64,000 nt of DNA from Sphaerodactylus townsendi (lineage: Eukaryota): contig NC_059426.1 in NCBI RefSeq assembly GCF_021028975.2, positions 22,940,001-23,004,000 of the forward strand, given 5' to 3'. The translations under genes and the position numbers were made by a program. Positions within the stretch are counted from its first letter, which is position 1, and every line of letters begins with the position of its first letter. The notes under the pieces are model-generated. The model made no database searches. It was not told the origin of the DNA and saw only the letters and a program-made list of their open reading frames with translations. This document shows positions 21,915 to 62,390 of the stretch, piece after piece.

Positions 21915-22185
21915 AGCATGGTGTATTAGAGTAGGTGGACTCTAATATAGCGAACTGGGTTTGATTCCCCACTCCTCCACATGAGTGGTTGACTCTTATC
22001 TGGTGAACCGGATTTGTTTCCCTGCTCATTCCTGCTGGGAGACCTTGGACCAGTCACAGTTCTCTCAGAACATTCTCAGCTTCATCTACCTCACATGGTA
22101 TCTGTTGTGGGTAGAGGAAAGGAAAGGAGTTTGTAAGCCCCTTTGAGTCTCCTTACAAGAGAGAAAGTGGGGTATAAATCCAAAC
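21915..22185 (+). mobile_element. tRNA-derived SINE (Squam3-like)
   Basis: A/B-box-like head (tggtgta.../ggtttgattcccc) and the family body and tail. Confidence 0.8.
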
Positions 22186-25258: not shown

Positions 25259-26370
25259 GATAAGAACATAAGAACAAGCCTACTGGATCAGACCAGAGTC
25301 CATCTAGTCCAGCACTCTGCTACTTGCAGTGGCCCATCAGGTGCCTTTGGGAGCTCACATGCAGGATGTGAAAGCGAGGGCCTTCTGCTGCTACTGCTGC
25401 TCCTGAGCACCTGGTCTGCTAAGGCATTTGCAGTCTCAGATCAAGGAGGATCAAGATTGGTAGCCACAGATCGACTTCTCCTCCATAAATCTGTCCAAGC
25501 CTTTTTAAAAGCTATCCAGGTTAGTAGCCATCACCACCTCCTGTGGCAGCATATTCCAAACACCAATCACACGTTGCGTGAAAAAATGTTTCCTTTTATT
25601 AGTCCTAATTCTTCCCCCCAGCATTTTCAATGAATGCCCCCTGGTTCTAGTATTGTGAGAAAGAGAGAAAAATTTCTCTCTGTCAACATTTTCTACCCCA
25701 TGCATAATTTTATAGACCTCAATCATATCCCCCCTCAGACGTCTCCTCTCCAAACTAAAGAGTCCCAAACGCTGCAGCCTCTCCTCATAAGGAAGGTGCT
25801 CCAATCCTTCAATCATCCTCATTGCCCTTCTCTGCACTTTTTCTATCTCTTAGATATCCTTTTTGAGATACCTGCAGGGCGGCCGAAGAGGGGCCCGGCG
25901 GCTCGGCCTGCCCGGCTGCCGGGAGAGCACCTGCCCCGCAAGCAGCGGGGCGGGCAGGAGCCAAAGCCCGCGTGCGGGCTGGAGATGTGCCCGCCCTGCT
26001 TCCTGCAGGGCGGCCGAAGAGGGGGGCGGCGGCTCCGCTCATGGAGCCGCAGAACAGCGGCGGAAGAGCCGCATGCGGCTCGCGAGCCGCGGGTTCCCGA
26101 CCCCTGAACTAAGACAACCAAATCCCTTTCCTGGTCTGTGACTGATAGCACTGACCCCTGTAGAGTGTATGTGAAGTTTGGATTTTTGGCCCCTATGTGC
26201 ATCACTTTACATTTACCTACATTGAACTGCATTTGCCATTTCTTAGCCCTCTCACCTAATTTATAAAGGTCCACTTGGAGCTCTTTGCAATCCTCTGTGG
26301 TTCTCACCACCCTACATAATTTGGTATAATCCGCAAACTTGGCCACCACGCTACCCACCCCTACTTCCAG
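25259..26370 (-). mobile_element. CR1 LINE 3' fragment, interrupted at 25870-26106
   Basis: RT C-terminal peptides KFADYTKL...WQMQFNVGKCKVMHIG and QRRAMRMIEGLEHLPYEERLQRLGLFSLERRRLRGDMI; (ttcttatg)n tail. Confidence 0.92.
25870..26106. mobile_element. One-ended CpG-rich hAT element fragment inside a CR1
   Basis: Ends gagccgcatgcggctcgcgagccgcgggttcccgacccctg (hAT-type terminus). Internal direct repeat cctgcagggcggccgaagagggg. No second TIR. Confidence 0.65.
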
Positions 26371-26414
26371 GGATTTCTCACTTGCATGGATTAACATTCT
26401 AAACCTAAAGAGTG

Positions 26415-27971: not shown

Positions 27972-29175
27972 TATAACTAATCCTCAGGAGCATTTACAAC
28001 TTTCCTTAGGACCCTGGAAGTCTGCATTAAACAATTACAGTACAAGCCTTGTTATCTGGCACTGTAATATCCAGAAAATGTGGTTAACCAACATGCAGAA
28101 TAACCAGCTTGGCTTGTGGGGTTAGTGGGTAGGGAGAACAGACAGTGAGATGCCATTGCAGTTGAAGGAAAGCAGTAGGAGGAGTCTGAGGAAAGGGTTA
28201 GAGAAAGGTAAGGCAAACCAGTGGCAGAGACCCTGATACATGTAGACCAACACCTTCTATGTCGACTGGCAATGGTGACCTAAGGCCACAGGCCTTTCCC
28301 CTGGACCCATTTAATATACCATTGGCTGAACTGTGGGACACTGTCCTCATCCCCAGACCTCCTATCAGTTGGGAATTCTCACCACCAACAAAGCTACAAT
28401 TAAGTATTAAATCAAACACTGACATTAGATGAAGTCAAGGCTAACCAGGACAACAATCAGGAACTTAAAGCAACTTCAAATCTTGATTTGACACATGAGC
28501 TTAAAGAAGAATCCTGATTAACCTTAACTTCAGCCAAGGTCACTGCTAATGCTTCCCTTAACTTGTTTTTGAGAGTGGGAGTGTTACACAAGAGCTTTAC
28601 AGAAACTACTATGCTGTTATACTTCTACATAAGCTCCGTGCATATTTAAGAGAACAGCTGTCTTATTTAGTCTGAAGGATTCCCTTTTATCTCAAAGCCA
28701 CACCCACACATTGACCATACTGTAATTCTATCAAATACAGCTAAAGCATCCTGCTCTTTGGGTATAACTAGGAAGTCTATAAGGGCCTTTTGTGGCAGTG
28801 AAATTATGTAAAAAAAAACAAACATTACGGTAGGCAAGGGGGGCAGCATAACACATGTCTCCTCAGAACCCAACAGAGAGGTACCTTTAAAGATGTTACA
28901 TTAAAAGGGTTTCAGAAAAGAACAAAACATTACAGCTATGGAACTGTATGTGTTGGATTTGTTAGCAAAGCAACACAACAATAAAACTAATTACTGTTAT
29001 TACCTGCCGTGGGTCCCACTGTGGCATGGGAGAAAGGTGGTTTACAAATGTTTCAATAAATACAGAGAAACAAAACTTCACTTAGTTGGCCTATGAAGTC
29101 TAACATGCCAGTTCTGATGTTAAGGTACAACATGATGGAGAACACGAATATTGAAATGTGCAGTTTTCCACTTAC

Positions 29176-29882
29176 CTCTTCCATCTCAAAAGAGTCCTTC
29201 TGCTGTAGCATGAGACTGACAATGGATGGGTTTGCTATCAGAATGCAGGGTTCCTTATCCGGTGGTGATGTAGGAAGCACAGGCAGCTCAGAGTTGCCCT
29301 CAAGACCACAAGTGCCCAAGGCAGGCATTTCGCTCTCCATCCTGGACGAGCTTGTAATACCAGCTTGCTCCCTAGGTCTATCTGAATGACCAAAGGAGTC
29401 CTTATTTTGCTCAGCTTCAGAAGGCATGTGGTCGCTTTGCAATCCTTGTGCAACGTTAGAGTCAGAAGAAAGTTCAGAAGCATGAAGAACATCCACAGTG
29501 CTTGGCTGATTACCAGGTACCTCCTCTTTTACTGTAGCCAGCAAAGTTGTTTTGAAGTGCTTTGGTGTTTTGGGTTCGTTTTTAGTGTCACAGTCCTCAA
29601 ACTGTCCGTTTTCAGCTTTCCCCTTTTCAACCGGCGAAGGCGTAGAACAGCTGCCCGCTTCACCTGCCTGCTGGTTCCCACAGAGGTTGAGTTTAGATAA
29701 GGTCTTCATCAAACGGCTCGCAGTGTTGCTTCGGGTTAGAGGCGGCGGGTTGGCTGGCTCTTTGCTGGAAGCCGTTGAATTCATGCTCCCAATTTTCTGC
29801 AACGGGGTGCCAGAAACTTGCGAATATAAGGAAGAGAATGCATTGGCCACAGTAGTGAGAACTTCAATTTGACGAAAGCGAC
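29176..29882 (-). CDS. ITPRID2: ITPRID2 coding exon 8 (707 bp)
   Basis: ccctgccag|GT CGC TTT CGT CAA... encodes RFRQIEVLTTVANAFSSLYSQVSGTPLQKIGS...PPPLTRSNTASRLMKTLSKLNLC...QQKDSFEMEE|gtaagt. It is the core of ORF 29053..30084. Confidence 0.96.
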
Positions 29883-30839
29883 CTGGCAGGGAGACAAAAC
29901 AGATGACAAACCGAACAATGGATGGCATTGTAAAATTCAGCCATGAAGCTACAAATGATTTGGAACTGGCAAAGGTGAAAGAGCAACCACACAAAAGCAG
30001 AGAAGAGTTCAGTTTCTCACACCAAGAAAACTTGGCTGAAACACATTGATAGCTTCGAGTTTCAGACATTTTGTTAAAACACAAGTCTGAACTTTAAAGG
30101 AAAAGAGTCCCTCTTCAAAGGAAATCTGTTTTCTCAAAGTGACTGCCAGACAGATTTCATACTTCCATTTCTTTTTCGATCACTACCGTCAACACTCACA
30201 CCTACTAAACTCCACTGGTGCTGAGGAACCATCTTTGGAAAGAAACTATACATTGGATCCAGGCAATGGATCATGGAGAGACTGTAAATCTTCCCAGCCT
30301 TCCTGTTTCCCCCAGATCTTTTTCAAGTCCAGGAAATTTTCTCCTCAGGTTGTGGGAGCCACATAGAGTAAAAGCTACATGGTACACAGGGAACACCAGG
30401 GAGAAATCATTCATCCTCATACACCAGGAGCTCCACTCTTGGAAGAAGCTACGAGTCACGTTGCCCACCTCCTCCTACAACCTCCCAATCTACACAGCTG
30501 TTACTACACATGGGTCCTGCAACTCCAACTCCATGTAGCTGGAAAAGATTGTTTCTGGGAGGAAATAACTAAGAAGATGGCTCTAACATACAAGGTATAT
30601 TTCCAATTATGTGCCTAAGAATTTCAAAGGTATAGAAGCAGAAGGAATTTTTTGTGATGTAGGTAAAAAGCGGGCAGAGAGCTTCTACACCCTTTGCCCA
30701 CACAAATCCTTACGTTCTCTTCCTTTCATCCCCTTCTCCATTGAGTCCAGCCCCTTCATCTCTATCAAGACAGCTCTTCTCCCTTTTAATTCATTTATTC
30801 CCCATGAAATCATCTTATTTATCTATTTCATTTAGGAAT

Positions 30840-33115: not shown

Positions 33116-33360
33116 AAGAAGAAGAGTTTGAATTTATACACAGCCCTTTTCTCTCCTGCAAGGAGACTCAAAGGGGCTTACAAACTCCTTTCCCTCCCTC
33201 TCCCCACAACAGATACCTTGTGAAGTCGGTGGGGTTCAGAGAGTTCCAAAGGCCTGCGACTAGCCCAAGGTCACCCACCAGGCTTTGGGTGTAGGAGCGG
33301 GGAAACAAATCCAGTTCACCAGATAAGAGTCCACCTGCTCTTAACCATTATACCATGCTG
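33116..33360 (-). mobile_element. tRNA-derived SINE (Squam3-like)
   Basis: Same family, reverse orientation. Confidence 0.8.
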
Positions 33361-33423
33361 AAGAGAGAACAAGACATATAATTGATCTGTTTCATGTGTC
33401 CAGGATATTAATTCTCTGCTTAC

Positions 33424-33522
33424 CTTGAAACCGTTGCGCTGCTTTTCCCAGAGCCAGTAGAGTTCATGCTTCGGCCCTTCTGATGAAACTGAAGTCTCTT
33501 GTCCTTTGCCAACATACCGTTA
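33424..33522 (-). CDS. ITPRID2: ITPRID2 coding exon 6 (99 bp)
   Basis: atgttcag|T AAC GGT ATG TTG GCA AAG ... GTT TCA AG|gtaagc encodes [32 protein letters not shown](S). Confidence 0.95.
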
Positions 33523-33914
33523 CTGAACATGCAAAAGAATCAAGAGTAGTAAGGCAATAAGTTTCTTTTCTTCCTAAGGGGTTCAAGATTATCTTATTTC
33601 CATTTCCTTAAGGGTTCACCACTGTCACATGAACAAGGTCAACACTCTTGACTAAAACATGCCCTTGGAGTACTCAGTCCATCCACATAAAAGGAAGTAG
33701 GAGTCCTCCCAAACCCTCTATTCTCTTGCATCTTCTCTCCTCTGGTATTTTCTCTGCTGAGAAGAAGAAGAAGAGTTGGATGTATATCCCCCCTTTCTCT
33801 CTTGTAAGGAGACTCAAAGGGGCTTACATACTCCTTTCCCTTCCCCCCTCACAACAAACACCCTGTGAGGTAGGTGGGGCTGAGAGAGCTCCAAAGAACT
33901 GTGACTAGCCCAAG

Positions 33915-34443
33915 ATTATTCTGGTTCCTAAATATACAACTATATTTATATATTTGTATTTAATGATTGTGCCTAAAGTGGCTGAAGAAGACATAACAGT
34001 CGAAAGTATTGGTTTTTTCCCCGGATCAATACTCCCACCTTCTATTGACCACCAGCCAAGGATTTCTCCATCAACATCCTGATGTTTGGTACGTTCATCT
34101 ATAAGAACATGAAGCTCATCCATGGAAGTTGAGTATTTACAGGCATCAGACAGTTGCTATCCTTCACATCCACACCATTAGTGGATCTCTTTCAAAGTGA
34201 TACCTTTATTACAGAGACTTGATATTATTGTGTTTGGGATCCCCTTTGTGGGTTTTATTCATTGTTCTGTTGTTGTTATTTATAATATGTATACTTTGTT
34301 GTTGATTAAGAGTTGTAGTTCTGTTATATAAACATTTTAATTATTTTAATTAAAGACAGAGTTTTAAAGTTCGCACTAGAGTCAGACAGGTTTTTTTCCC
34401 TTCTATAAATTAGATGCTGTCTCTGGCTCATTAGATATTTTTT
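33915..34443 (+). mobile_element. 529-bp non-coding hammerhead-bearing insertion (Penelope-like pLTR or retrozyme-like)
   Basis: Flanked by the direct repeat ACTAGCCCAAG (33904-33914 and 34444-34454). It splits a SINE that resumes exactly after it, and it contains a hammerhead. Confidence 0.75.
33978..34038 (+). ncRNA. Type-I hammerhead ribozyme (predicted intact)
   Basis: GTGG-CTGAAGA-A-GAC[ATAACA]GTC-GAA-AGTATTG[gttttttccccggat]CAATACT-C-CCAC: stems I, II and III, full conserved core, CUC cleavage triplet at 34032-34034. Confidence 0.75.
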
Positions 34444-34945
34444 ACTAGCCCAAGGTCACCCAGCTGGCATGTCTTGGCGTGCACAAGCTAATCTAGTTCA
34501 CCAGATAAGCCTCCACAGCTCAAGTGGCAGAGCAGGAAATCAAGCCCAGTTCTCCAAATTAGAGCACACCTGCTCTTAACCACTACACGATGCTGGCTCT
34601 GGGGTTTTGTTTCACTTCCAGGGAACTGCCCCAAATGTCTTCCCATATCTAATGAATATGGAAATGACTCTGTTCTATATTTTTGGCACAGTTTCCTTCC
34701 AGGGTCTGATTTCTGTAGTTCAGGTCTCAGACCACAAATGGAACACTTTCACCACCTCCAGTGAGTCACATGACAGCAGCAAGGAGGGCACCCTTAGAGC
34801 CTGGACTTCTAGGCCTCACCCAGCAGAACCAGCTGCTGGACCACAGCATGAAGTCCTGAATGTGTCCAGAGACTCATACTGAAAGCCCAGGAGGAAGGCT
34901 TTGGGTTCAAACATCCATTCTGTTGTAAAGCATGTTGGGTTACAC

Positions 34946-35518: not shown

Positions 35519-36343
35519 CTGAAAAGGGAAACAATACATATAAATTTCCTGCACTGTAATATAAATAACCACGAACAAATAGCAACTACTTGGTCCAATA
35601 ATAAACAGTACAGTTCCTTTCAGCCTGTACACTGGCGCTGTAAACTCATACGGTACATGCAGCCAACTTCATATATTAGCACACGTGAAGCTGCCTTATA
35701 CTGAATCAGACAGTGTCTATTTAGAGAGACAGCAACTCTCCAAAATCTCAGGTAGAGGTCTTCTACATTACCTATTGCTTGGTCCTTTTGACTAGAGATA
35801 CCAGGGATCGAACCCGGGGCCTTCTGCATGCCAAACAAAGACTCTACCATTGATCCATCACCCCTCCCAAACATACTGGATGAGGATTAAGAACACACAG
35901 GAAGCTTGCACAGGAAACGTTTCTAGGGTCAAGTTGAGGGACACTGATGTACAAGGACAAAGAGTCAGGAGACATGAGGAGGAGACTGTCCTCCCACAAT
36001 TCTCTGTGAAAAGACAACCATCTCCTCCCTTATTTGTGAGATAAGACTGAGCAACTGGAATGGCCAGCCAATCCCAAGGACTAACATAATGCTGAGCCTA
36101 CCGTATCAAGGATCAAAGTTGATCTGAATATTAACAGTGTGTACGGTTTAGAATATACCCGGCACAACTGTCACCCCTGCCTCCTACCCTTTGAAAAGTG
36201 TCTCTGTGTTCCTCTGATATCTGAAGAGCCAACTGAGGCAGGGCAGAGGGAACTAGCTTTTCAAAGACTTGATGAACGATGGCACTACTGCTGTTCATGG
36301 GGCATGTATTCAGTGCCAACTTCCGTTATGGTGACTTCTCAAA

Positions 36344-39404: not shown

Positions 39405-39995
39405 AGAAGAAGAGTCTGGATTTATACTCCACCTTTCTCTCCTGTAAGGAGTCTCAAAGCAGCTTACAAACAGCAGCAGTGGCGTAGGAGGTTAAGAGCT
39501 CGTGTATCTAATCTGGAGGAACCGGGTTTGATTCTCCGCTCTGCCGCCTGAGCTGTGGAGGCTTATCTGGGGAATTCAGATTAGCCTGTGCACTCCCACA
39601 CACGCCAGCTGGGTGACCTTGGGCTAGTCACAGCTTCTCGGAGCTCTCTCAGCCCCACCTACCTCACAGGGTGTTTGTTGTGAGGGGGGAAGGGCAAGGA
39701 GATTGTAAGCCCCTTTGAGTCTCCTACAGGAGAGAAAGGGGGGATATAAATCCAAACTCTTCTTCTTCTTCTTCTTCTTCCTTTCCCTTCCTCTCCTCAT
39801 AACAGACACCTTGTGAGGTAGGTGGGGCTGAGAGTGTTCTGAGAAAACTGTGACTAGCCCAACGTCACCCGGCAGGCTTCATGTAGAGGAGCAGGGAACC
39901 AATCCAGTTCACGAGATAAGACTCTGCCACTCATGTGGAAGAGCGGGGAATCAAACCCAGTTCTTCAGATTAGACCCCGCTGCACTTAGCCACTA
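39405..39995. mobile_element. Minus-strand SINE with a full-length plus-strand SINE (39471-39780) nested inside
   Basis: The host breaks at gcttacaaa| and resumes at |ctttcccttcctctcc. Confidence 0.85.
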
Positions 39996-40769
39996 CACCT
40001 TGAGTCTCCTTACAGGACATAAAGGCAGGGTATAAATACAAACTCTTCTTTTTCAGCCTGAGACCCTGGAACGCACAGCCAGTCTGAGTAGACAAGATTG
40101 ATCTGGGCAAACCAGTATGAATCTGTATAAGGGCAGCTTCATGTATTCATGTAATGAGGTAATTCAAACACTATATACTTTTTATTAGCCCTTTGGATTG
40201 TCATTACATATTTGTGGCCCACCAGGAACAATGCTTAATCTCCAGAGTGAGAGATGCCAAGACTCAAGGTTGGCACTTCTCATTTTCATGCCATTTGCTT
40301 GAAGTTCTGGACATGTGGAGGCTGGCTGTGGCAGCTTCAGAACAAACAGAAAGTACTCCGTACCCGCTCAAAGGCACTCTTACTTCACATATTCCATGGC
40401 TGATCCCTAGCAACAAAGCCAGCTCCATAGCAGAACTCTCTTCCAAATTAAGCCCCAGATAGAGACGTCTCAACTGTTTTTATAACACAACTGACGTTTA
40501 AAAACCAGCTCAGATTTTTTTTTCATGTAGAAACAAGAATCGGTCTTTTTTCAAAACAGCAACAAAACGCGAGTTCCATAAAACTGCTGTGCTTCACTGA
40601 ATCACCCTGTACCGGACGCAGAAGTCTGATTTCGAACTCTGAGCTTTGCCTCCCGCCTCTGACCCCATTACCAACCAACCAAGTCCCACTCGTCTAAGAA
40701 CGGTCTTCCATTCAGACAGTAGGCAGCTTTGAAGTAGAAGATCAATCACATGCTAATGGCCACACCTAC

Positions 40770-40826: not shown

Positions 40827-41772
40827 CTTTAATAAAAAAAAGGATGTAAAGTTTAGCATTGAGCATCAATGCCTACACGTCAGTAATCAGGACTGCAATA
40901 AACCAGACACTAAAAAACTATTTAAAAATGCTTCCCTCTCCATTTCTTTTTAAGTTAGAGACCCAATTAGCTCTCAACAATGCCTTGCAGAGAGCCTCAA
41001 GTGGACAGATGTTACTCTTCAGAATGCCTTGATTAAAAGACAGGAAGGGATGCCGGTGATTTCCACAGTTACTCTTTCAAAACTTCCCTGCTAGGGAAAA
41101 CTGGCTTGTCATAAATCATGAGCAGAGCACCGGTCGGTAGCATGCACTGCTTACAAACAAAAATGCGAAGACTGCATCTTAAGACACACTTTGGAAACCT
41201 TACCGGGGAGCTCCAAACCCGCAGGACACCAAGGATCAGACATCCCTTCTCGGCTCTGTGCATTGGGAAATAAAAAGGGCGCTCCAGCGACCGCTTCTTA
41301 TATACCTTGTCACTACCTGTAGATTCTTGTTGTACTTTGAACTTTTGCAGTCTGGTTGGTTCAGGTGGTAACTTTTCAGGCGTGGCAAGTTCAGTCACAG
41401 CAACCCGAGAAAGACTGTACCAAAAAAAGCTGACCTACTTCTCCACGTACACGCTTGACAAACTTCTTTCCCACACGCCACACAACCTCACTCCTTTCCC
41501 TGAACAATTAAAACTCCCTGTCGAACCCCTTCAAAGAAAACAAGGTGCTCTCAGCAACTTTCACCAGCAGCCAGTCTAACTGACTGCACTATTGTTTTCA
41601 AGTAATACCTCCTCAAAAAAGACAGACAGAGAAAGACAGAGAGAGGAGGAGGAGGAGGAGGAGTTTGGATTTATATCCCCCCTTTCTCTCCTGTAGGAGA
41701 CTCAAAGGGGCTTACAATCTCCTTGCCCTTCCCCCCTCACCTTCATACACTGCTTAACCATAAGATCCTTAC

Positions 41773-44093: not shown

Positions 44094-44372
44094 CCAGCAT
44101 GGTGAGTGGTTAAGAGAAGGATTCTAATCTGAGTTTGATTCCCCACTCCTTTCACCTGAGTGGCAGAGGCTTATCTGGTGAACCAGATGTGTTTCCACAC
44201 TCCTACATTTCTGCTGGGTGACCTTGGGCTACTCAAGTTCTTTGGAACTCTCTCAGCCCCACCTACCTCACAAGGTTTCTGTTGCGGGGGGAGGAAGAGA
44301 AAGCAGTTTGTAAGCCACCTTGAGTCTCCTTACAGGAGAGAAAGGTGGGGTATAAATCCAAACTATTATTAT
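44094..44372 (+). mobile_element. tRNA-derived SINE (Squam3-like)
   Basis: Family head, body and gggtataaatccaaac tail. Confidence 0.8.
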
Positions 44373-47300
44373 TGTTATTGCAGCCCCTGCTTCAATTGCT
44401 TTGGAACATATTGGTCCCAACATCTCCAGCATACATTTTTTTGATTAAAGGGGACTTCTGCCTTTTTACTAGTAGACAAGTTGGCTGGATCCAACCCTTG
44501 TTAGGTAAATCCTATACCAGCAAAAACTTCACAACTGACATTTAAAAGAAAGCAGAGCAACAAATCACACACCTTCTGTCCTCCAAGAACTATGGATGGA
44601 AAACTGGCAAACAAAACACTTAAAAAACCTTTCTGTGCATTGGAAGCCTGAAAGTTTTCAATATGACAATCTGGAGAATCTGGGACAAACTTCCTTGGTA
44701 ATGGCAAAGCTGTGTTTGCTCCATTTTCAAAGTCAAATCCTGTTACACGTCCATGGTTGTATTCACACATACTCATAGCTTGTCATTACCGAGAGGAGCC
44801 CTGGAAACATTTTGGGTGGTGTATTTCCCCTTCCTGATCAGGAATCGAAAACTTCCATAAACTTTGTTAATAAATCATGATTCCCATCAAAGATTCAACC
44901 ACTGTCAGAAATCCTAGTCCACATGCAAGGGAGCACACCTATATTTGGCCACTTTGTCCAGTCTGGACAAATGAAAACCTGATTAGTTGAGGAACAATTT
45001 TCAAACAGTTCTCAAGAAGGAATGCAGGAGCCCAAGGATTTAAGAGTCCTTTTTCTTAATACCACAGAATGTGACCTGTCCTTAGATCCAAACGCAGACC
45101 ATTCCCTGATAGCCTTGCATGTTTCCCAGTGACAAGTTAGTAACTATGTTACACCACAAAACAACAACACACACTTTGCAACACCCATTCTGGACATGAA
45201 CAACCAATGGAAAGGAGTGAGAAAGTTTCAATATGGAACCAGTGCCAGATGGCAAACAAGTCTCTGGCAATCAGAGTCTGATGCAATCCCAATGAATTTT
45301 CAGGTCAACGAGCAAAGTTTCAGAAAAAAAAACTTTTTCAAGTAATGGCCTTCTTAAAGCTCAGGTTGAAAACAACAGCCCTTATTGTTTATACCACAGA
45401 CTTTCAACAGCTCTTTTCTCCTCAGCTTACTTAGTGGCCTCTTCAGAAAGCCTGTCTTTTGTTTCCCATACCCTCCTAAACTGGTGCCAATAATGCCCAT
45501 GTCGGCCAGTAGCAAAATGGTAACTGATCACCAGATGTCGGTACTCTTCTTAAAGAGCTAAACTTTCCCTCTCAGAAGCCCATTAACCAGCAGAGCAGCT
45601 CTGGCAAGTGGCTTGCATTTCTAGGCACAGACAGACAACTAGAAAATATCTGCTACGCTGAAAACCTGAAGAGAGAAAACACAGCCTGTGTAGAAGGCTC
45701 TTGGGATTCAACAGGAAACACTGGCAAATAAAGCTGTTTTACAGCAGAAGCAACTTGAAGCAACTTGTTTCTCACCTGTTTATAGAGGTGCATTTTACTG
45801 CTAACTGGGAAGCTTGCTTTCAGGAGGGAGACCTCTGATCCTCTTTATTTCCTTACTATATTTAGATCCTGCTTTTCAGCTGTTACATTCTGAATGCCAA
45901 TTACAGCATTTTCAACATACACTGGAGTGGATCTGGCCTCTACCCTACCGCTACATTGAGCAAAGCTTCTTTATTGAAGCTTCTGCCTCAAGTCTGAAGT
46001 CCTCCCCCAATTACAGGATCCCCTTTAACAGAAGAATGTCTTTAGCTGGAGGAAGGCTCCTTAGACTGGGAGTAGGCTGCTTAGTGGATAGATAGTTCCA
46101 CCCTACTTAGATTCTTCCTCTCTGTCCCCCTTAATATATTAGTCCCTGTCGCTAAGTAAAGTTCTAGGCCTTACCTCCCAGGATGGCAGGACCAATCATG
46201 GAGACAACAGAGACTTCTCCATCTTCAATGGCAGCTGCTTATTGAATACTCTGCCCAAAGGGGTACTTGGATGCAGTTCAGCCGTAACATAAAACCATGG
46301 TTAGTCTGCAAACCCAGAATTCAGCTCACAGACAACCAGGCTGGCCTCCACAAATAGTGGACTCACCACCTTCACTCTAACTGAGCATCTATGTAGCTCA
46401 GGTGAATGCAACAATATCACCTGGGAGGAAGCCAGGATATCTGCATGTGCATGCCACAGGAAACCTTGCTTAAGATTAAGGCAGTGTCTACACTTGGATG
46501 TTGCAGTATCGTTGCATTCCAACAGGCGTTTGTATCTAGGTTCTTTCGTCCACACCATGAAAATCCAGTTGTTACAGTGCAACAATAACACAACATCCAG
46601 TGATCTGTGGGTGTTGCCTGGCTGCGGTTCATCAAGCCACATAGAAACCATGGTTTCCAGTCTTAATTTGATGGATCCTAACTAATCCCAGAGGGGCCTG
46701 CCCTTGCACTCAAGTCAAATACAGAGCTGCTTTAAATAAACTACATTAAATGATATAGCTGAACTAGGGAAGAAAGAGAATGTCTTCTTTTAGTGTTAAA
46801 TATAACAAGAAAACGATTGAAAAGCAAAATTAGAGTTTACAAAGCCACGGGCCAGAAATTCTTTATTACTTAAGATAATTATTCCCCTACCGCTCTATCA
46901 AAATAGTCCCTTGAACGCGACTTTAGATGCACAGTGCTCAGCGTCTCTTGGGACAGATCTAACAGCATCTTGTTCCACAACATGATTCGGGCATGACATT
47001 TGACATAGTCCACTGTAAACTTTTACTAGCTGACACAGCAGACCTCACGCATGAGTGCTAAGAACATAAACCATAAACTTTCTTGTTGGTTTTGAATATT
47101 TGTATTGACTTTCAAAGGCATGGAGAAAGAAGGGACCAGCTCACCTTTCTAACAGAGAACAGGCAAACGCCACCTTATGCATGCCACTTTCCCATCTGTA
47201 AAATGGGAACAGCAGATTGATCTGTCCACTTAGGGCTGTCAGGAGGATACCAGAAATAAACTGACATTTGTTCCACATCAGAAGAGCCATAAAAGCAATT

Positions 47301-58324: not shown

Positions 58325-60864
58325 TAATTATAATCTATCTGCAGATCATTTTGGTTTCCTGGTTTCAGGAATGATTTTTGAAGTTTAACCTCTATGGTTT
58401 AGGAAAACGTCAGTGGTGGGATTCAGCAGGTTCGCACCACTTCGGCAGAACCGGTTGTTAAAATGGTGCTTGTAAACAACTAGTTGTTAAATTATTTGAA
58501 TCCCACCACCAGAACAGGTTGTTAAATTATTTGAAATTATTAGTGGTGTAGGGTAAAAGTGTTGGACTAGGATCCAGGAGACCCAGAATCAAATCCTCAC
58601 TCGACCATGGAAACTCTCTGAGTGACCTTGACTACCTCACAGGCCTGCTGTGAGCATAAAACAGAGGATAGAAAAAGAATATAAATACTTTTAGGTCTCC
58701 AGTGCAAAGAAAGGTAGGGTATGAATAAGATGAAATAAAATATTAAAGGTGTATAATACAATTGCAAAAACAGCACATGGGAGGAACAGCTATTCCGTCT
58801 TGCTGGTTTACATTTAACGGAAGCAAGGAATTCAGGATAAAAATGGGGGGGGGGGTTGTGAGTAACTAGGACAGAGGCTGTGGCCCAGTAGAAGAGCCTT
58901 TGCTTAGCATGCAGGTTTCAGGTTCAATCTTCTGCATCTACAGTTCAAAGGATCAGGCAACAGGTGATTTGAAAAACCTTCACCTGAAACCATGGAGATC
59001 TGCGGCTGGTTTGAATAGACAATGCTGCTTTTGATGGACCAATGGCTGGATTCAGTACAATGCAAATGTGTGCATGGGTAAAAGCCAAACCATAATGCCT
59101 GTTTCCCTCCAAGGTTCATCCAATTACTGTGCCTTTTCCTAAACCATAGAGGTTAAACTTCAAAAATAATTTCCTAAAACCAGCAAACCAAAACCCTCCG
59201 CAGATAGATTATAATTACTTCTTTTTAAAAATGGAAGTTGGCTTTCTTAAATTAAAAAATCTAACCGCAGAATTTTGGAGTGATGTGCAATCAGCAACTT
59301 TAATCTTTATCTGACTTTCCTCCACCCCTACTCTAAAGGAGGCAGCGCACCTCAGCTTCACCTCCTTTACCCTCTAAACAACCTTAACTAGGAGGATAGT
59401 GACTGATCAAAGGATACCAAGTAAGGCTTGCAGCTAAGAAGAGGATTCAAACACAGGTCTCCCTAATAATCACCATGTTGATTATTTCCCACTTTCTTCT
59501 AAGGAATTCAGGGCAACATATCTGGTTCTCTACACACCTCTTTTTTCATTTTGTTCTCACAACAACCCTGTCAGATCAGTCAGGACGAGCCTGTACAGAA
59601 ATTTGAACCTAGATTACCAGAGTCCCGATCTTAATTGTTCTCTACCAAGGCTGGCATTAACCGCTGCATCACTCTGTCTCACAATGACTCCCTGGATTAT
59701 TTCATCCTCCTGAGAAACCTCAACTGGAGTATACCACAGCTAACTAGCCTCTGCAATATTAATGGAATAAAACACATTTCTCAGTATCAGCAGAAATACC
59801 CGAGTAATTGTAACACCAGATGGCACAGGAGGACTTCCGTTCTGGACACATTTGCACCTAGATGTTTGACTTCAAAGCAACTCACTTCAGGTAACAGACT
59901 TCAGAGGAACAGCACAATTCTACAGAGAGATACTGCAGTCCAAACCCACTGATTTCAGTGGGTTTAGACCAGACTAAAATCTGCACAAATTGCACTGTAA
60001 GGTTCTAGTACTTAATGTATTTCCTCACCCAAGAGTAAACCTGAACAAACACCCTTCTCAGTAAACCTACACATGACTGTTCAGCGGAGTCTTACAACAA
60101 CCAGATTTCAAACATATTATTTTACAGGGAAGGAAACGCAGCTAATTGCAAAGTGACACGTTCAAGACTGCAGCTCCAACGCATTCAAGACAACAGCTGA
60201 AATCACAAATTGCAGGGAATATACTGGATTGAATTTGTTTCCTTAAAAAAAAAATCATGTTTCCAAACTACAACATTACACTGTGGCTTCGCGTCTCTCT
60301 TTATGACACAGAACCTGCAGTTCCAAAGAACAGCTGCTGTTTCCTGAACAACATCGTAAACTGCAAAGCAAACAACACTGACAGAGGTTTGGTTTTTTTA
60401 CTTCGTTCCCTAAACAGATTTACTAAAAGTACACACACACAGGAAAAAAATAAAAATAAAAAACAGGATTTGGTCACAGCCCAACACAGAAGTAGGAAAA
60501 TGTGAACCCAATGAAATCAACAGACTTAAACATGCCTGACAGCATGATCCAGGCAGGTCTACTCAGAAGCAAGACCCAAAGCATTCAGTGAGTCTGGCTC
60601 CCAAGCAAGTGTGTGGAATGCTTTCCCAAGCACACTTTTTGGGCAGGATTCTATGGCAATCGATTTACACATCAAAGCGTCTTACCCACAACCCACAAAA
60701 CTGAAGAAGCTCTTTCCAGCAGCGCAATCCTAAACAGAGTTACATTTTCCAAAGGCCATGGAAGGTTTGGAAACGCACAACTCTGTGAAAACAGGCGCAC
60801 TCCCTGCCCAAAATTAAAGTGACAGTTTCAGCTGTTACAGCAATTCATCAAACCACTAACTTAC

Positions 60865-60910
60865 CTGCAATCTTTAAGCCATATTGCAATTTTTTCGTTT
60901 GGAATACTGC
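60865..60910 (-). CDS. ITPRID2: ITPRID2 coding exon 2 (46 bp)
   Basis: tttttccag|GC AGT ATT CCA AAC GAA AAA ATT GCA ATA TGG CTT AAA GAT TGC AG|gtaagt encodes (G)SIPNEKIAIWLKDC(R). Confidence 0.95.
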
Positions 60911-61299
60911 CTGGAAAAAGGAGAGAAACAATGGATTATAATGGAGGAGTTGCATTACAAAGAGAGCAAATAAAAACAATACAGTGCAGGAAATAAACAG
61001 CGGGAGGGGAACGCTACATCTAATTTCCCAAATATAATTTGGCTCCTCGGAGTTCAAGCCCAAAGAAGCGTTACTCATAAGTAAGCGTGGCTGAAGTCTC
61101 ACCACCCTCCCTGGAAGCCAGCTCGACAGATCTCAGCGCCCGGACACACGTGTTTAGAGTTACAGGCTCAACAGTCTCCTCAATCCCAGCTGCAGGGGGC
61201 CCCGTCACCCCATCCGATCCTAGCCACGTTTACTCAGAAGTAAGCCCCTTGCAAATCAGTGGGATTCCTTCCTATCCTGTTAAGGGATTGCAGCAACAC

Positions 61300-62390
61300 A
61301 GCTGGTGGTCCAGCGGCTGTTGACCTTTCCGCTCCCAGACACGACCGATGCGAGAAAAGAGGGACTGCGGTGGGCGCTTGCACAGACCTCCTTCCCGACC
61401 CGGGTTCAGGTCCGGCGCTTCTGGCGAGAGCCGCTCGGCCTCCGAGGCTTGCCAGGAATCTCGGCTTTTCGCCCAGGCCTTCCTCTTGTGCACGGCCCCT
61501 CGTCCCCCGTCGCCCGCTTCCTCCATGGGATCTCTCCGGCTGGCTCTTGCCCGGCAGAGTCGCTCGCTCAGCACCACCAGGACCCACCACTGCCTACAGA
61601 CGTGCAAGAATAGCCCAACCCAGAGGCGGGTCGGTGTAGCAGCAAGCGGAGCTCCCGCCGCAGAAGTTGCTCGTCCTTCTGCAAAGTTCGCCCGGGACGG
61701 CGAGATCGGGGCCACCCGCCCCGCTAGGACCACCAGAGGGGGCAGCGCTGGGGGCTGCCCCACATCTGCCCGGCGCACAGCTGGCGGGAAACTTCTAGCC
61801 CCTGCCCCACCATCCCCGGGCGACTCCGCGCGCTCTGCCCGCTCGCAGCGCCGCAGCCGAGGGCGACCCCGCGGGCAGGGCGGGAGCAAAGGGAGGCGGA
61901 AAAAAAAAGGAACGAAGTTAAACTCTGCGTTTGCCGTCTCCCGCCCGCAGCGATCTTGTTCGACTCCGTCCCGGACGCCGCCTGAATGCTTCTCCGCCCC
62001 GTTGAGAGGAAACGCGGTTGCCCAACAGATCCCAATGCCTAGATTCGAGCAAGTACGCCCGCCCGAGGCTGTTACGGAGAAGCGCGCTAAGGGCAACCCG
62101 AAAGTTTAACCCAGCCGGGTGTTCGGGCTCCCCTTTTGCCCGGGCAGGGGAGCGCCTCCGAAACCCGCTGTTGGTGGCAGGACAGGGCAGCCTGCAGGGG
62201 GCGCCCCGGCCCGGGAGGGTGCGTGGCTTTGAGGCTCAGTGGGGTTGCCGGGGTTGTCCGCCCTGGGGCAGCCTCGCCTGACTTCCTCATACCACCGCCG
62301 CCCACGTAGCCAGCCGCTGCCTCCTGCTTCGCCCTGTTTCGTGACGACACGGGCACACGTTCAGACGTGCAAAGAGAGTACCGTGTCGAG
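61300..62390 (-). promoter_or_regulatory. CpG island / ITPRID2 promoter and 5' UTR
   Basis: Strong GC and CpG enrichment over exon 1 and upstream, with several CCGCCC (GC-box) motifs. The TSS cannot be placed from sequence alone. Confidence 0.88.
61388..61526 (-). CDS. ITPRID2: ITPRID2 (SSFA2/KRAP) coding exon 1
   Basis: ATG at 61526 gives MEEAGDGGRGAVHKRKAWAKSRDSWQASEAE..., resembling the RRKAWAKCRSSWQASE motif of mammalian SSFA2 (recalled). Donor GGAG|gtctgt is phase 1 and fits exon 2. Other phase-1 GT sites lie nearby, so the 3' boundary is less certain. Confidence 0.8.

Follow-up and report, generated by a model that had tools for sequence, protein, structure and literature searches.

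A hammerhead consensus in an ITPRID2 intron of Sphaerodactylus townsendi: a probable chance match within a non-coding insertion

Animal Penelope-type hammerheads combine a helix I of 4-5 bp with a bulged nucleotide before a helix II of 6-8 bp; they possess no stable helix III and act as dimers (PMC4209133). In PAc from Anolis, the one lizard Penelope element characterised so far, the ORF begins with stem II; counted from the ORF start, the cut site is at 26 nt and the start of reverse transcription at 111-118 nt (PMC11167929). From these figures we reckon that its insertions end roughly 90 nt past the cut site. Animal non-LTR retrozymes are low-GC tandem repeats with one hammerhead per unit, lengths of 51-972 bp and target-site duplications of more than 4 bp (PMC7229834, bioRxiv 10.64898/2026.07.22.740005). 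The de la Peña group uses a contact between loop 1 and loop 2 as the criterion for a bona fide type-I motif (PMC7229834). In fungal and protist Penelope-like elements there are type-I hammerheads that work as monomers, with a large helix III and without tertiary contacts (PMC4209133). Sites that merely fit the consensus are a further class: of the nine in the human genome only two show conservation, and matches by chance are to be expected (PMC3088659).

The locus compared here with these systems lies in a 64-kb stretch of Sphaerodactylus townsendi DNA (64,000 nucleotides, hereafter the window). Its positions 33978-34038 had been described in a first-pass annotation as an apparently intact type-I hammerhead ribozyme. 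The letters of the motif, the insertion that carries it, its predicted folds and the rate at which such motifs arise by chance were examined, and the orthologous locus of Gekko kuhli was used for comparison. On balance, the 61-nt stretch is probably a chance consensus match of minimal format, inside a 529-bp non-coding insertion.

The motif, its insertion and the host gene

Direct reading confirmed the letters of a complete hammerhead consensus of 61 nt on the + strand at 33978-34038. All 13 core positions are present, as a descriptor scan also confirmed, and three helices of 4 bp (stem I), 3 bp (stem II) and 11 bp (stem III) meet at the core. The core-adjacent pairs G10.1-C11.1, C1.1-G2.1 and A15.1-U16.1 are all formed. 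Stem I is not extendable, A33977 lying opposite C34039. The Watson-Crick part of stem III consists of seven pairs (AGTATTG 34005-11 with CAATACT 34027-33), which are followed by G34012-U34026, U34013-A34025, U34014-G34024 and U34015-G34023. The coordinates of these and all other features are collected in Table 1.

Every letter and coordinate of the motif in the first-pass annotation matches our reading. It had proposed a stem III of 7-9 bp, extendable by G-U and U-A pairs; these pairs are confirmed, and two U-G pairs bring the helix to 11 bp. Its predicted cleavage site after C34034 is right by hammerhead numbering, and a C at position 17 is the commonest cleavage-site base of hammerheads. The tolerance that it claimed for an extra nucleotide before stem II agrees with Penelope-type hammerheads, and the contrast it drew between this motif and the minimal Penelope-type hammerheads is likewise correct (both PMC4209133). 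The motif also passes the three false-positive filters of Perreault et al. 2011, i.e., an intact core, paired core-adjacent positions and no multiple mispairs (PMC3088659).

Our descriptor scan of both strands of the window returned 33978-34038 as the only good hammerhead match. A weak hammerhead-like core was noted at 57017-56922 on the - strand, with CUGAAGA, a bulge, a 4-bp stem II and GAAA; its outer stems are only 3 bp and 2 bp, which is chance level.

Table 1. Features of the motif, the insertion, the surrounding repeats and the host gene. Positions refer to the window unless L001, the Gekko kuhli ITPRID2 locus, is named.
Feature	Position	Strand	Description or basis
Stem I, 5' strand	33978..33981	+	GUGG, positions 2.4-2.1; pairs with CCAC 34035-38
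Core C3-A9	33982..33988	+	CUGAAGA; sole CTGANGA on either strand of the insertion
Extra unpaired A	33989	+	Between A9 and G10.1; direct reading
Stem II hairpin	33990..34001	+	GAC (33990-92) / GUC (33999-34001), 3 bp; loop AUAACA (33993-98)
Core G12 A13 A14	34002..34004	+	GAA; direct reading
Stem III hairpin	34005..34033	+	11 bp from A15.1-U16.1, loop UUUCCCC; direct reading and descriptor scan
C17	34034	+	Predicted cleavage between 34034 and 34035, from hammerhead numbering
Stem I, 3' strand	34035..34038	+	CCAC, positions 1.1-1.4; direct reading
Competitor CAGCCA	34053..34058	+	Pairs with UGGCUG 33979-84 in minimum-energy folds of 121-nt and 529-nt contexts
Insertion	33915..34443	+	529 bp, 33% GC, non-coding; alignment of the SINE halves to the intact copy
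Target-site duplication, left copy	33904..33914		ACTAGCCCAAG, 11 bp; identical to 34444-34454
Target-site duplication, right copy	34444..34454		ACTAGCCCAAG, 11 bp; identical to 33904-33914
Split SINE, left half	~33765..33914	-	Alignment to intact copy 33120-33365
Split SINE, right half	34444..34601	-	Alignment to intact copy; joins left half seamlessly
SINE family copies, window	33120-33365, 39600-40000, 41645-41734, 44158-44373, 21919-22183		
SINE family copies, L001	14841-14986, 19573-19802, 24409-24650, 27548-27816, 32007-32092		
ITPRID2 exon piece	61496-61416	-	tblastn with ITPRID2 proteins
ITPRID2 exon piece	60911-60864	-	tblastn with ITPRID2 proteins
ITPRID2 exon piece, other side of the motif's intron	40827-40723	-	tblastn with ITPRID2 proteins
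ITPRID2 exon piece nearest the motif (downstream exon, ~460 bp off)	33521-33426	-	tblastn with P0003, P0006 and P0232, 84-97% identity
ITPRID2 exon piece	31735-31514	-	tblastn with ITPRID2 proteins
ITPRID2 exon piece	29892-29173	-	tblastn with ITPRID2 proteins
ITPRID2 exon piece	8168-8097	-	tblastn with ITPRID2 proteins

The motif starts 64 nt inside the insertion, which splits a SINE. The stretch ACTAGCCCAAG that flanks the insertion on both sides is uninterrupted in the intact SINE copy at 33120-33365. The - strand assigned to the split SINE is inferred from the tRNA-like head sequence at its 34601 end. The insertion contains no ORF over 80 aa, its + strand ends in T6, and neither terminal inverted repeats, nor poly(A) at either end, nor an internal tandem repeat with a period above 9 bp, nor a palindromic partner for the motif was found. 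Beyond the single CUGANGA core, no second hammerhead, minimal or of the U3-A8 variant type, was detected on either of its strands. From the cut site at C34034 to the 3' end of the insertion there are 409 nt, with nothing hammerhead-like near that end. A search by blastn for another copy of the insertion gave only short AT-rich noise in the 64-kb window as well as in the 34-kb G. kuhli locus. No coding remnant of a reverse transcriptase or endonuclease was found in it, and its 80-aa stop-free frame had no relative in the protein collection, where a blank means little.

Several identities were considered for the insertion and rejected: a DNA transposon (terminal inverted repeats are lacking), an L1-type retrocopy (neither end has poly(A), and the + strand ends in T6), the 3' end of a CR1 or L2 element (terminal motif at the wrong end), a tRNA-derived SINE (weak A-/B-box resemblance, no tRNA match), a delta-like agent (no ORF) and a coding fragment (no ORF and no homologue).

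In the ORF at 29056-30084 (-), Pfam recognises the domain KRAP_IP3R_bind (E = 8.6e-17), and the relatives of this ORF are ITPRID2 proteins. With the mammalian ITPRID2 representative P0003 as query, mammalian ITPRID2 proteins were the only matches, which confirmed the gene name. For the 36-aa exon ORF nearby, an exact-match query returned nothing. The motif's intron lies between the exon pieces 40827-40723 and 33521-33426. As the gene runs on the - strand and the motif on the + strand, the motif is antisense and intronic, as the first-pass annotation had stated and as the domain and the tblastn exon pieces bear out. At 60860-62100 the window is GC-rich, with long overlapping ORFs on both strands and the first ITPRID2 coding exon pieces inside; we read this region as the probable CpG-island promoter of ITPRID2.

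Among the collections examined, Gekko kuhli came closest, with 79% amino-acid identity over the large ITPRID2 exon; the source genome is therefore probably that of a gecko with no close kinship to Gekko. Its ITPRID2 introns (L001) align with the window at 70-82% identity and in conserved order. Window positions 33412-33764 align with L001 16040-15671, and 34602-34943 with L001 15662-15323. The segment in between (~33765-34601), which comprises the SINE and the 529-bp insertion, has no counterpart, and L001 15662-15671 represents an empty site, so that nothing about the motif is conserved there. Together with the nesting, this indicates that the SINE was inserted after the lineages had split and that the 529-bp unit was then inserted into the SINE. 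From the alignments, the 529-bp insertion is thus taken to be young and lineage-specific, absent from Gekko kuhli. The dated order of events in this ITPRID2 intron (empty site, SINE, 529-bp unit with its 11-bp duplication) is a solid by-product of the analysis, and the nested-insertion series could serve as a phylogenetic presence/absence marker in gekkotans.

One SINE family, with the core GACTAGCCCAAGGTCACCCAGC and the tRNA-like head GTGTAGTGGTTAAGAGCAGG, is very abundant in the ITPRID2 intron. Gekko kuhli has copies of it as well (75-88% identity), most of them at non-orthologous sites. The two adjacent ORFs at 25505-26397 (-), of 110 and 184 aa, resemble the C-terminal part of a CR1-type LINE ORF2 (motif LGLFSLERRRLRGDMIEVYK); they had no Pfam match at E<=0.01. 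Three 5S-rRNA-like matches were observed in the G. kuhli locus (L001 31706-31819, 31877-31989 and 22798-22897, - strand); their scores of 28-38 bits reach or narrowly miss the gathering score, and they may be 5S-derived SINEs or pseudogenes. A long near-perfect palindrome at L001 15150-15270, next to the position orthologous to the insertion site, matches plant miRNA-precursor models on both strands and is probably a fold-back or MITE-like element.

Covariance models, predicted folds and chance expectation

The Rfam covariance-model search proposed in the first-pass annotation was run and was negative for all hammerhead families: Hammerhead_1, Hammerhead_3, Hammerhead_II, HH9 and HH10 gave no match at E<=10 on segments of 2 kb, 141 nt or 69 nt around the motif. 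The Rfam search of the G. kuhli ITPRID2 locus also returned no hammerhead, so this search lacks a gecko hammerhead as a positive control. The sole Rfam match above gathering score in the window was tRNA-like (35793-35864, - strand, 36.2 bits); it probably represents the head of a further tRNA-derived SINE and not a tRNA gene.

The three-stem hammerhead structure, with a calculated energy of -12.5 kcal/mol, was never the predicted minimum-energy fold, either for the bare motif or in context. In the predicted folds stems II and III form, the stem III hairpin being present in every one of them, and stem I is displaced by alternatives. The probability that all hammerhead pairs form together came to 0.095 for the 61-mer by itself and dropped to between 1e-3 and 3e-5 when segments of 77 to 529 nt around it were folded. 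The competitor listed in Table 1 is predicted to form a 6-bp helix (33979-84/34053-58) that ties up C3, U4 and G5 together with part of stem I. Because nearest-neighbour energies leave out the tertiary structure of the core, the unfavoured fold is only moderate counter-evidence. No partner for a loop-loop tertiary contact was found for loop 2 (AUAACA): the 4 bp of stem I form an open helix, with A33977 opposite C34039, and thus offer no loop or bulge 1 to touch it. The RNA of the whole 529-nt insertion is not unusually structured compared to shuffled sequence (z = -0.75 for the + strand and -1.2 for the - strand).

Chance expectation was assessed with Markov sequence generated from the dinucleotide frequencies of the window, and rates are given per Gb of single strand. 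With stem I >=4 and stem II >=3 throughout, 1.74 Gb of such sequence yielded 8.0 matches per Gb for stem III >=7, 1.15 per Gb for stem III >=9 and 0.57 per Gb for stem III >=11. Matches whose hammerhead fold was at least as stable as that of the motif (-12.5 kcal/mol) occurred at 0.93 per Gb, i.e., two events in 2.16 Gb. A 2-Gb genome would hence hold roughly 2-30 chance matches, depending on whether equal stability or the looser criterion of stem III >=7 is applied, and about 0.04 equally stable ones are expected in the 19.6 Mb of the source genome scanned so far (307 windows), with tens over the full scan. In every simulated match the hammerhead fold was separated from the minimum-energy fold by more than 0.5 kcal/mol; the bare 61-mer stays within that margin. 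On the real window, 539 decoy cores of the same composition gave 24, 5 and 0 matches at stem III >=3, >=5 and >=7. These counts agree with the Markov rates, and real sequence is therefore not grossly richer in such hairpins. The motif is beyond chance within the 64-kb window and not so at genome scale; it is rare enough to merit checking and too common to stand by itself.

Weighing the competing explanations

A fortuitous match is the reading that we favour. No Rfam hammerhead model matched at E<=10, the chance rates are 0.93 per Gb for equally stable matches and 8 per Gb for stem III >=7, with decoys in agreement, and human consensus sites are mostly non-conserved (PMC3088659). Folding predictions place other structures below the hammerhead in energy, the locus presents a single core without a tandem unit or palindromic partner, and the insertion RNA is ordinary in structure. 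The orthologous G. kuhli intron lacks both the SINE and the insertion, and the 409 nt to the 3' end of the insertion compare with roughly 90 nt reckoned for the Anolis Penelope element (PMC11167929). ITPRID2 and, to judge from its head sequence, the split SINE both point along the - strand, so that known or likely transcripts would carry the inert complement. Considering the negative Rfam search, the failure to find a paralogue in the window or the G. kuhli locus, the empty G. kuhli site, the unfavoured fold and the chance rate, the description of the stretch as an apparently intact ribozyme exceeds the evidence. What argues against a chance origin is the flawless core with its core-adjacent pairs, C17 and the three filters passed; the expectation of only ~0.04 equally stable matches in 19.6 Mb, with no simulated match within 0.5 kcal/mol; the bulged nucleotide and 4-bp stem I, which are Penelope-type traits; and the setting in a mobile insertion with an 11-bp duplication and a low GC content as in non-LTR retrozymes.

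The same observations feed a different explanation, to which we accord a real but minor chance: a genuine inherited type-I hammerhead of an undescribed non-autonomous gecko retroelement, retrozyme-like or related to the Penelope pLTR. The long helix III would permit cleavage as a monomer, element transcripts would be processed, and the insertion would be a single retroposed unit. The intact core and core-adjacent pairs, the bulge before stem II and the short stem I speak for it, as do the 529 bp, 33% GC and 11-bp duplication, all within the ranges of animal non-LTR retrozymes, and the small number of chance matches (~0.04) expected in 19.6 Mb of the source genome; monomeric hammerheads with a large helix III do exist in fungal and protist Penelope-like elements (PMC4209133). 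It is weakened by the lack of a covariance-model match, by a helix II of 3 bp compared to 6-8 bp in animal Penelope hammerheads, and by the failure to detect a second hammerhead or tandem repeat, a further copy in 64 kb of the source genome or 34 kb of Gekko kuhli, or a related peptide in the protein collection (a blank there means little). Moreover, the motif is misplaced for Penelope-type initiation of reverse transcription, the insertion RNA is without a compact retrozyme-like fold, and in context the competing helix disrupts the core. The more specific proposition, that geckos carry an undescribed non-autonomous element whose hammerhead with an 11-bp helix III cleaves as a monomer, the insertion being one young copy, we consider doubtful. 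To our knowledge, all animal Penelope and retrozyme hammerheads described so far are dimer-dependent, and we know of no monomeric large-helix-III hammerhead in animals. A working ribozyme at this locus would be the first animal retroelement hammerhead built for monomer action, and a handle on RNA processing by such elements.

We regard it as very unlikely that the hammerhead comes from a canonical Penelope-like element (Poseidon or Neptune) of which the insertion would be a pLTR fragment, solo or 5'-truncated. In Penelope hammerheads helix II is long and a stable helix III is missing (PMC4209133), the insertion contains no reverse transcriptase or endonuclease remnant and no ORF over 80 aa, and its 3' end lies 409 nt past the predicted cut instead of roughly 90 nt, with nothing hammerhead-like near that end; these points weigh against the abundance of Penelope-like elements and hammerheads in reptiles (PMC4209133, bioRxiv 10.64898/2026.07.22.740005), the variable length of Penelope target-site duplications and the fitting bulged nucleotide. 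Host exaptation, with an intronic ribozyme regulating ITPRID2 or an antisense transcript in the manner of HH9 and HH10, is scarcely credible. The intronic position some 460 bp from an exon would suit it, and the antisense orientation of the motif and the lack of a match to the HH9 or HH10 models do not; since the insertion is lineage-specific and missing from the orthologous Gekko kuhli intron, this explanation is effectively refuted.

If the match is fortuitous, as we favour, a + strand transcript could in principle still fold as a minimal hammerhead. Such an RNA would be expected to cleave the C34034-C34035 linkage, with a 2',3'-cyclic phosphate and a 5'-OH as the resulting ends. Cleavage would probably be slow or nil at cellular Mg2+, as predicted from the 4-bp stem I and 3-bp stem II, the missing loop-loop contact and the stronger competing helix. 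Judged by its sequence, self-cleavage as a monomer in vitro is possible, and by analogy with any minimal hammerhead even a chance match might cleave slowly. Nothing points to a biological role of the motif. Even a flawless hammerhead consensus that includes a long helix III arises by chance a few times per vertebrate genome; the label ribozyme needs family conservation, a covariance-model match or cleavage data, and the present motif is a worked example.

Comparison with known hammerhead systems

The motif shares with Penelope-type hammerheads the type-I topology, the 4-bp stem I, the unpaired nucleotide (A33989) and the location in a retro-insertion of a reptile genome. Unlike them, it has a helix II of 3 bp (theirs 6-8 bp) and a helix III of 11 bp (theirs unstable). 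Penelope hammerheads also form large families and sit where pLTR and ORF meet, close to the insertion's 3' end, and neither feature was found for the motif.

With non-LTR retrozymes it has in common a low-GC non-coding unit of a few hundred bp, a type-I motif and a duplication of more than 4 bp, all of which are generic traits. Retrozymes are tandem, their loops 1 and 2 are in contact, and their circular RNAs are compact; the insertion is one unit with one motif, no such contacts and an ordinary folding energy.

The long helix III, the modest helices I and II and the lack of a recognisable tertiary interaction resemble the hammerheads of fungal and protist Penelope-like elements. The existence of these monomeric hammerheads means that the architecture of the motif is not absurd. 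We know of no link between them and vertebrates. They belong to endonuclease-deficient, telomere-associated elements of other kingdoms (PMC4209133).

Like HH9 (RECK) and HH10 (C10orf118), the motif is of type I and lies within an intron of a protein-coding gene. HH9 and HH10, however, are on the sense strand, conserved in amniotes or mammals and detected by Rfam, whereas the motif is antisense, lineage-specific and undetected. With minimal laboratory hammerheads and consensus sites (PMC3088659) it shares a complete core, three short helices, the lack of a tertiary contact, and an isolated, non-conserved occurrence; it differs from both in the extra unpaired A ahead of G10.1 and in a helix III that, at 11 bp, is unusually long.
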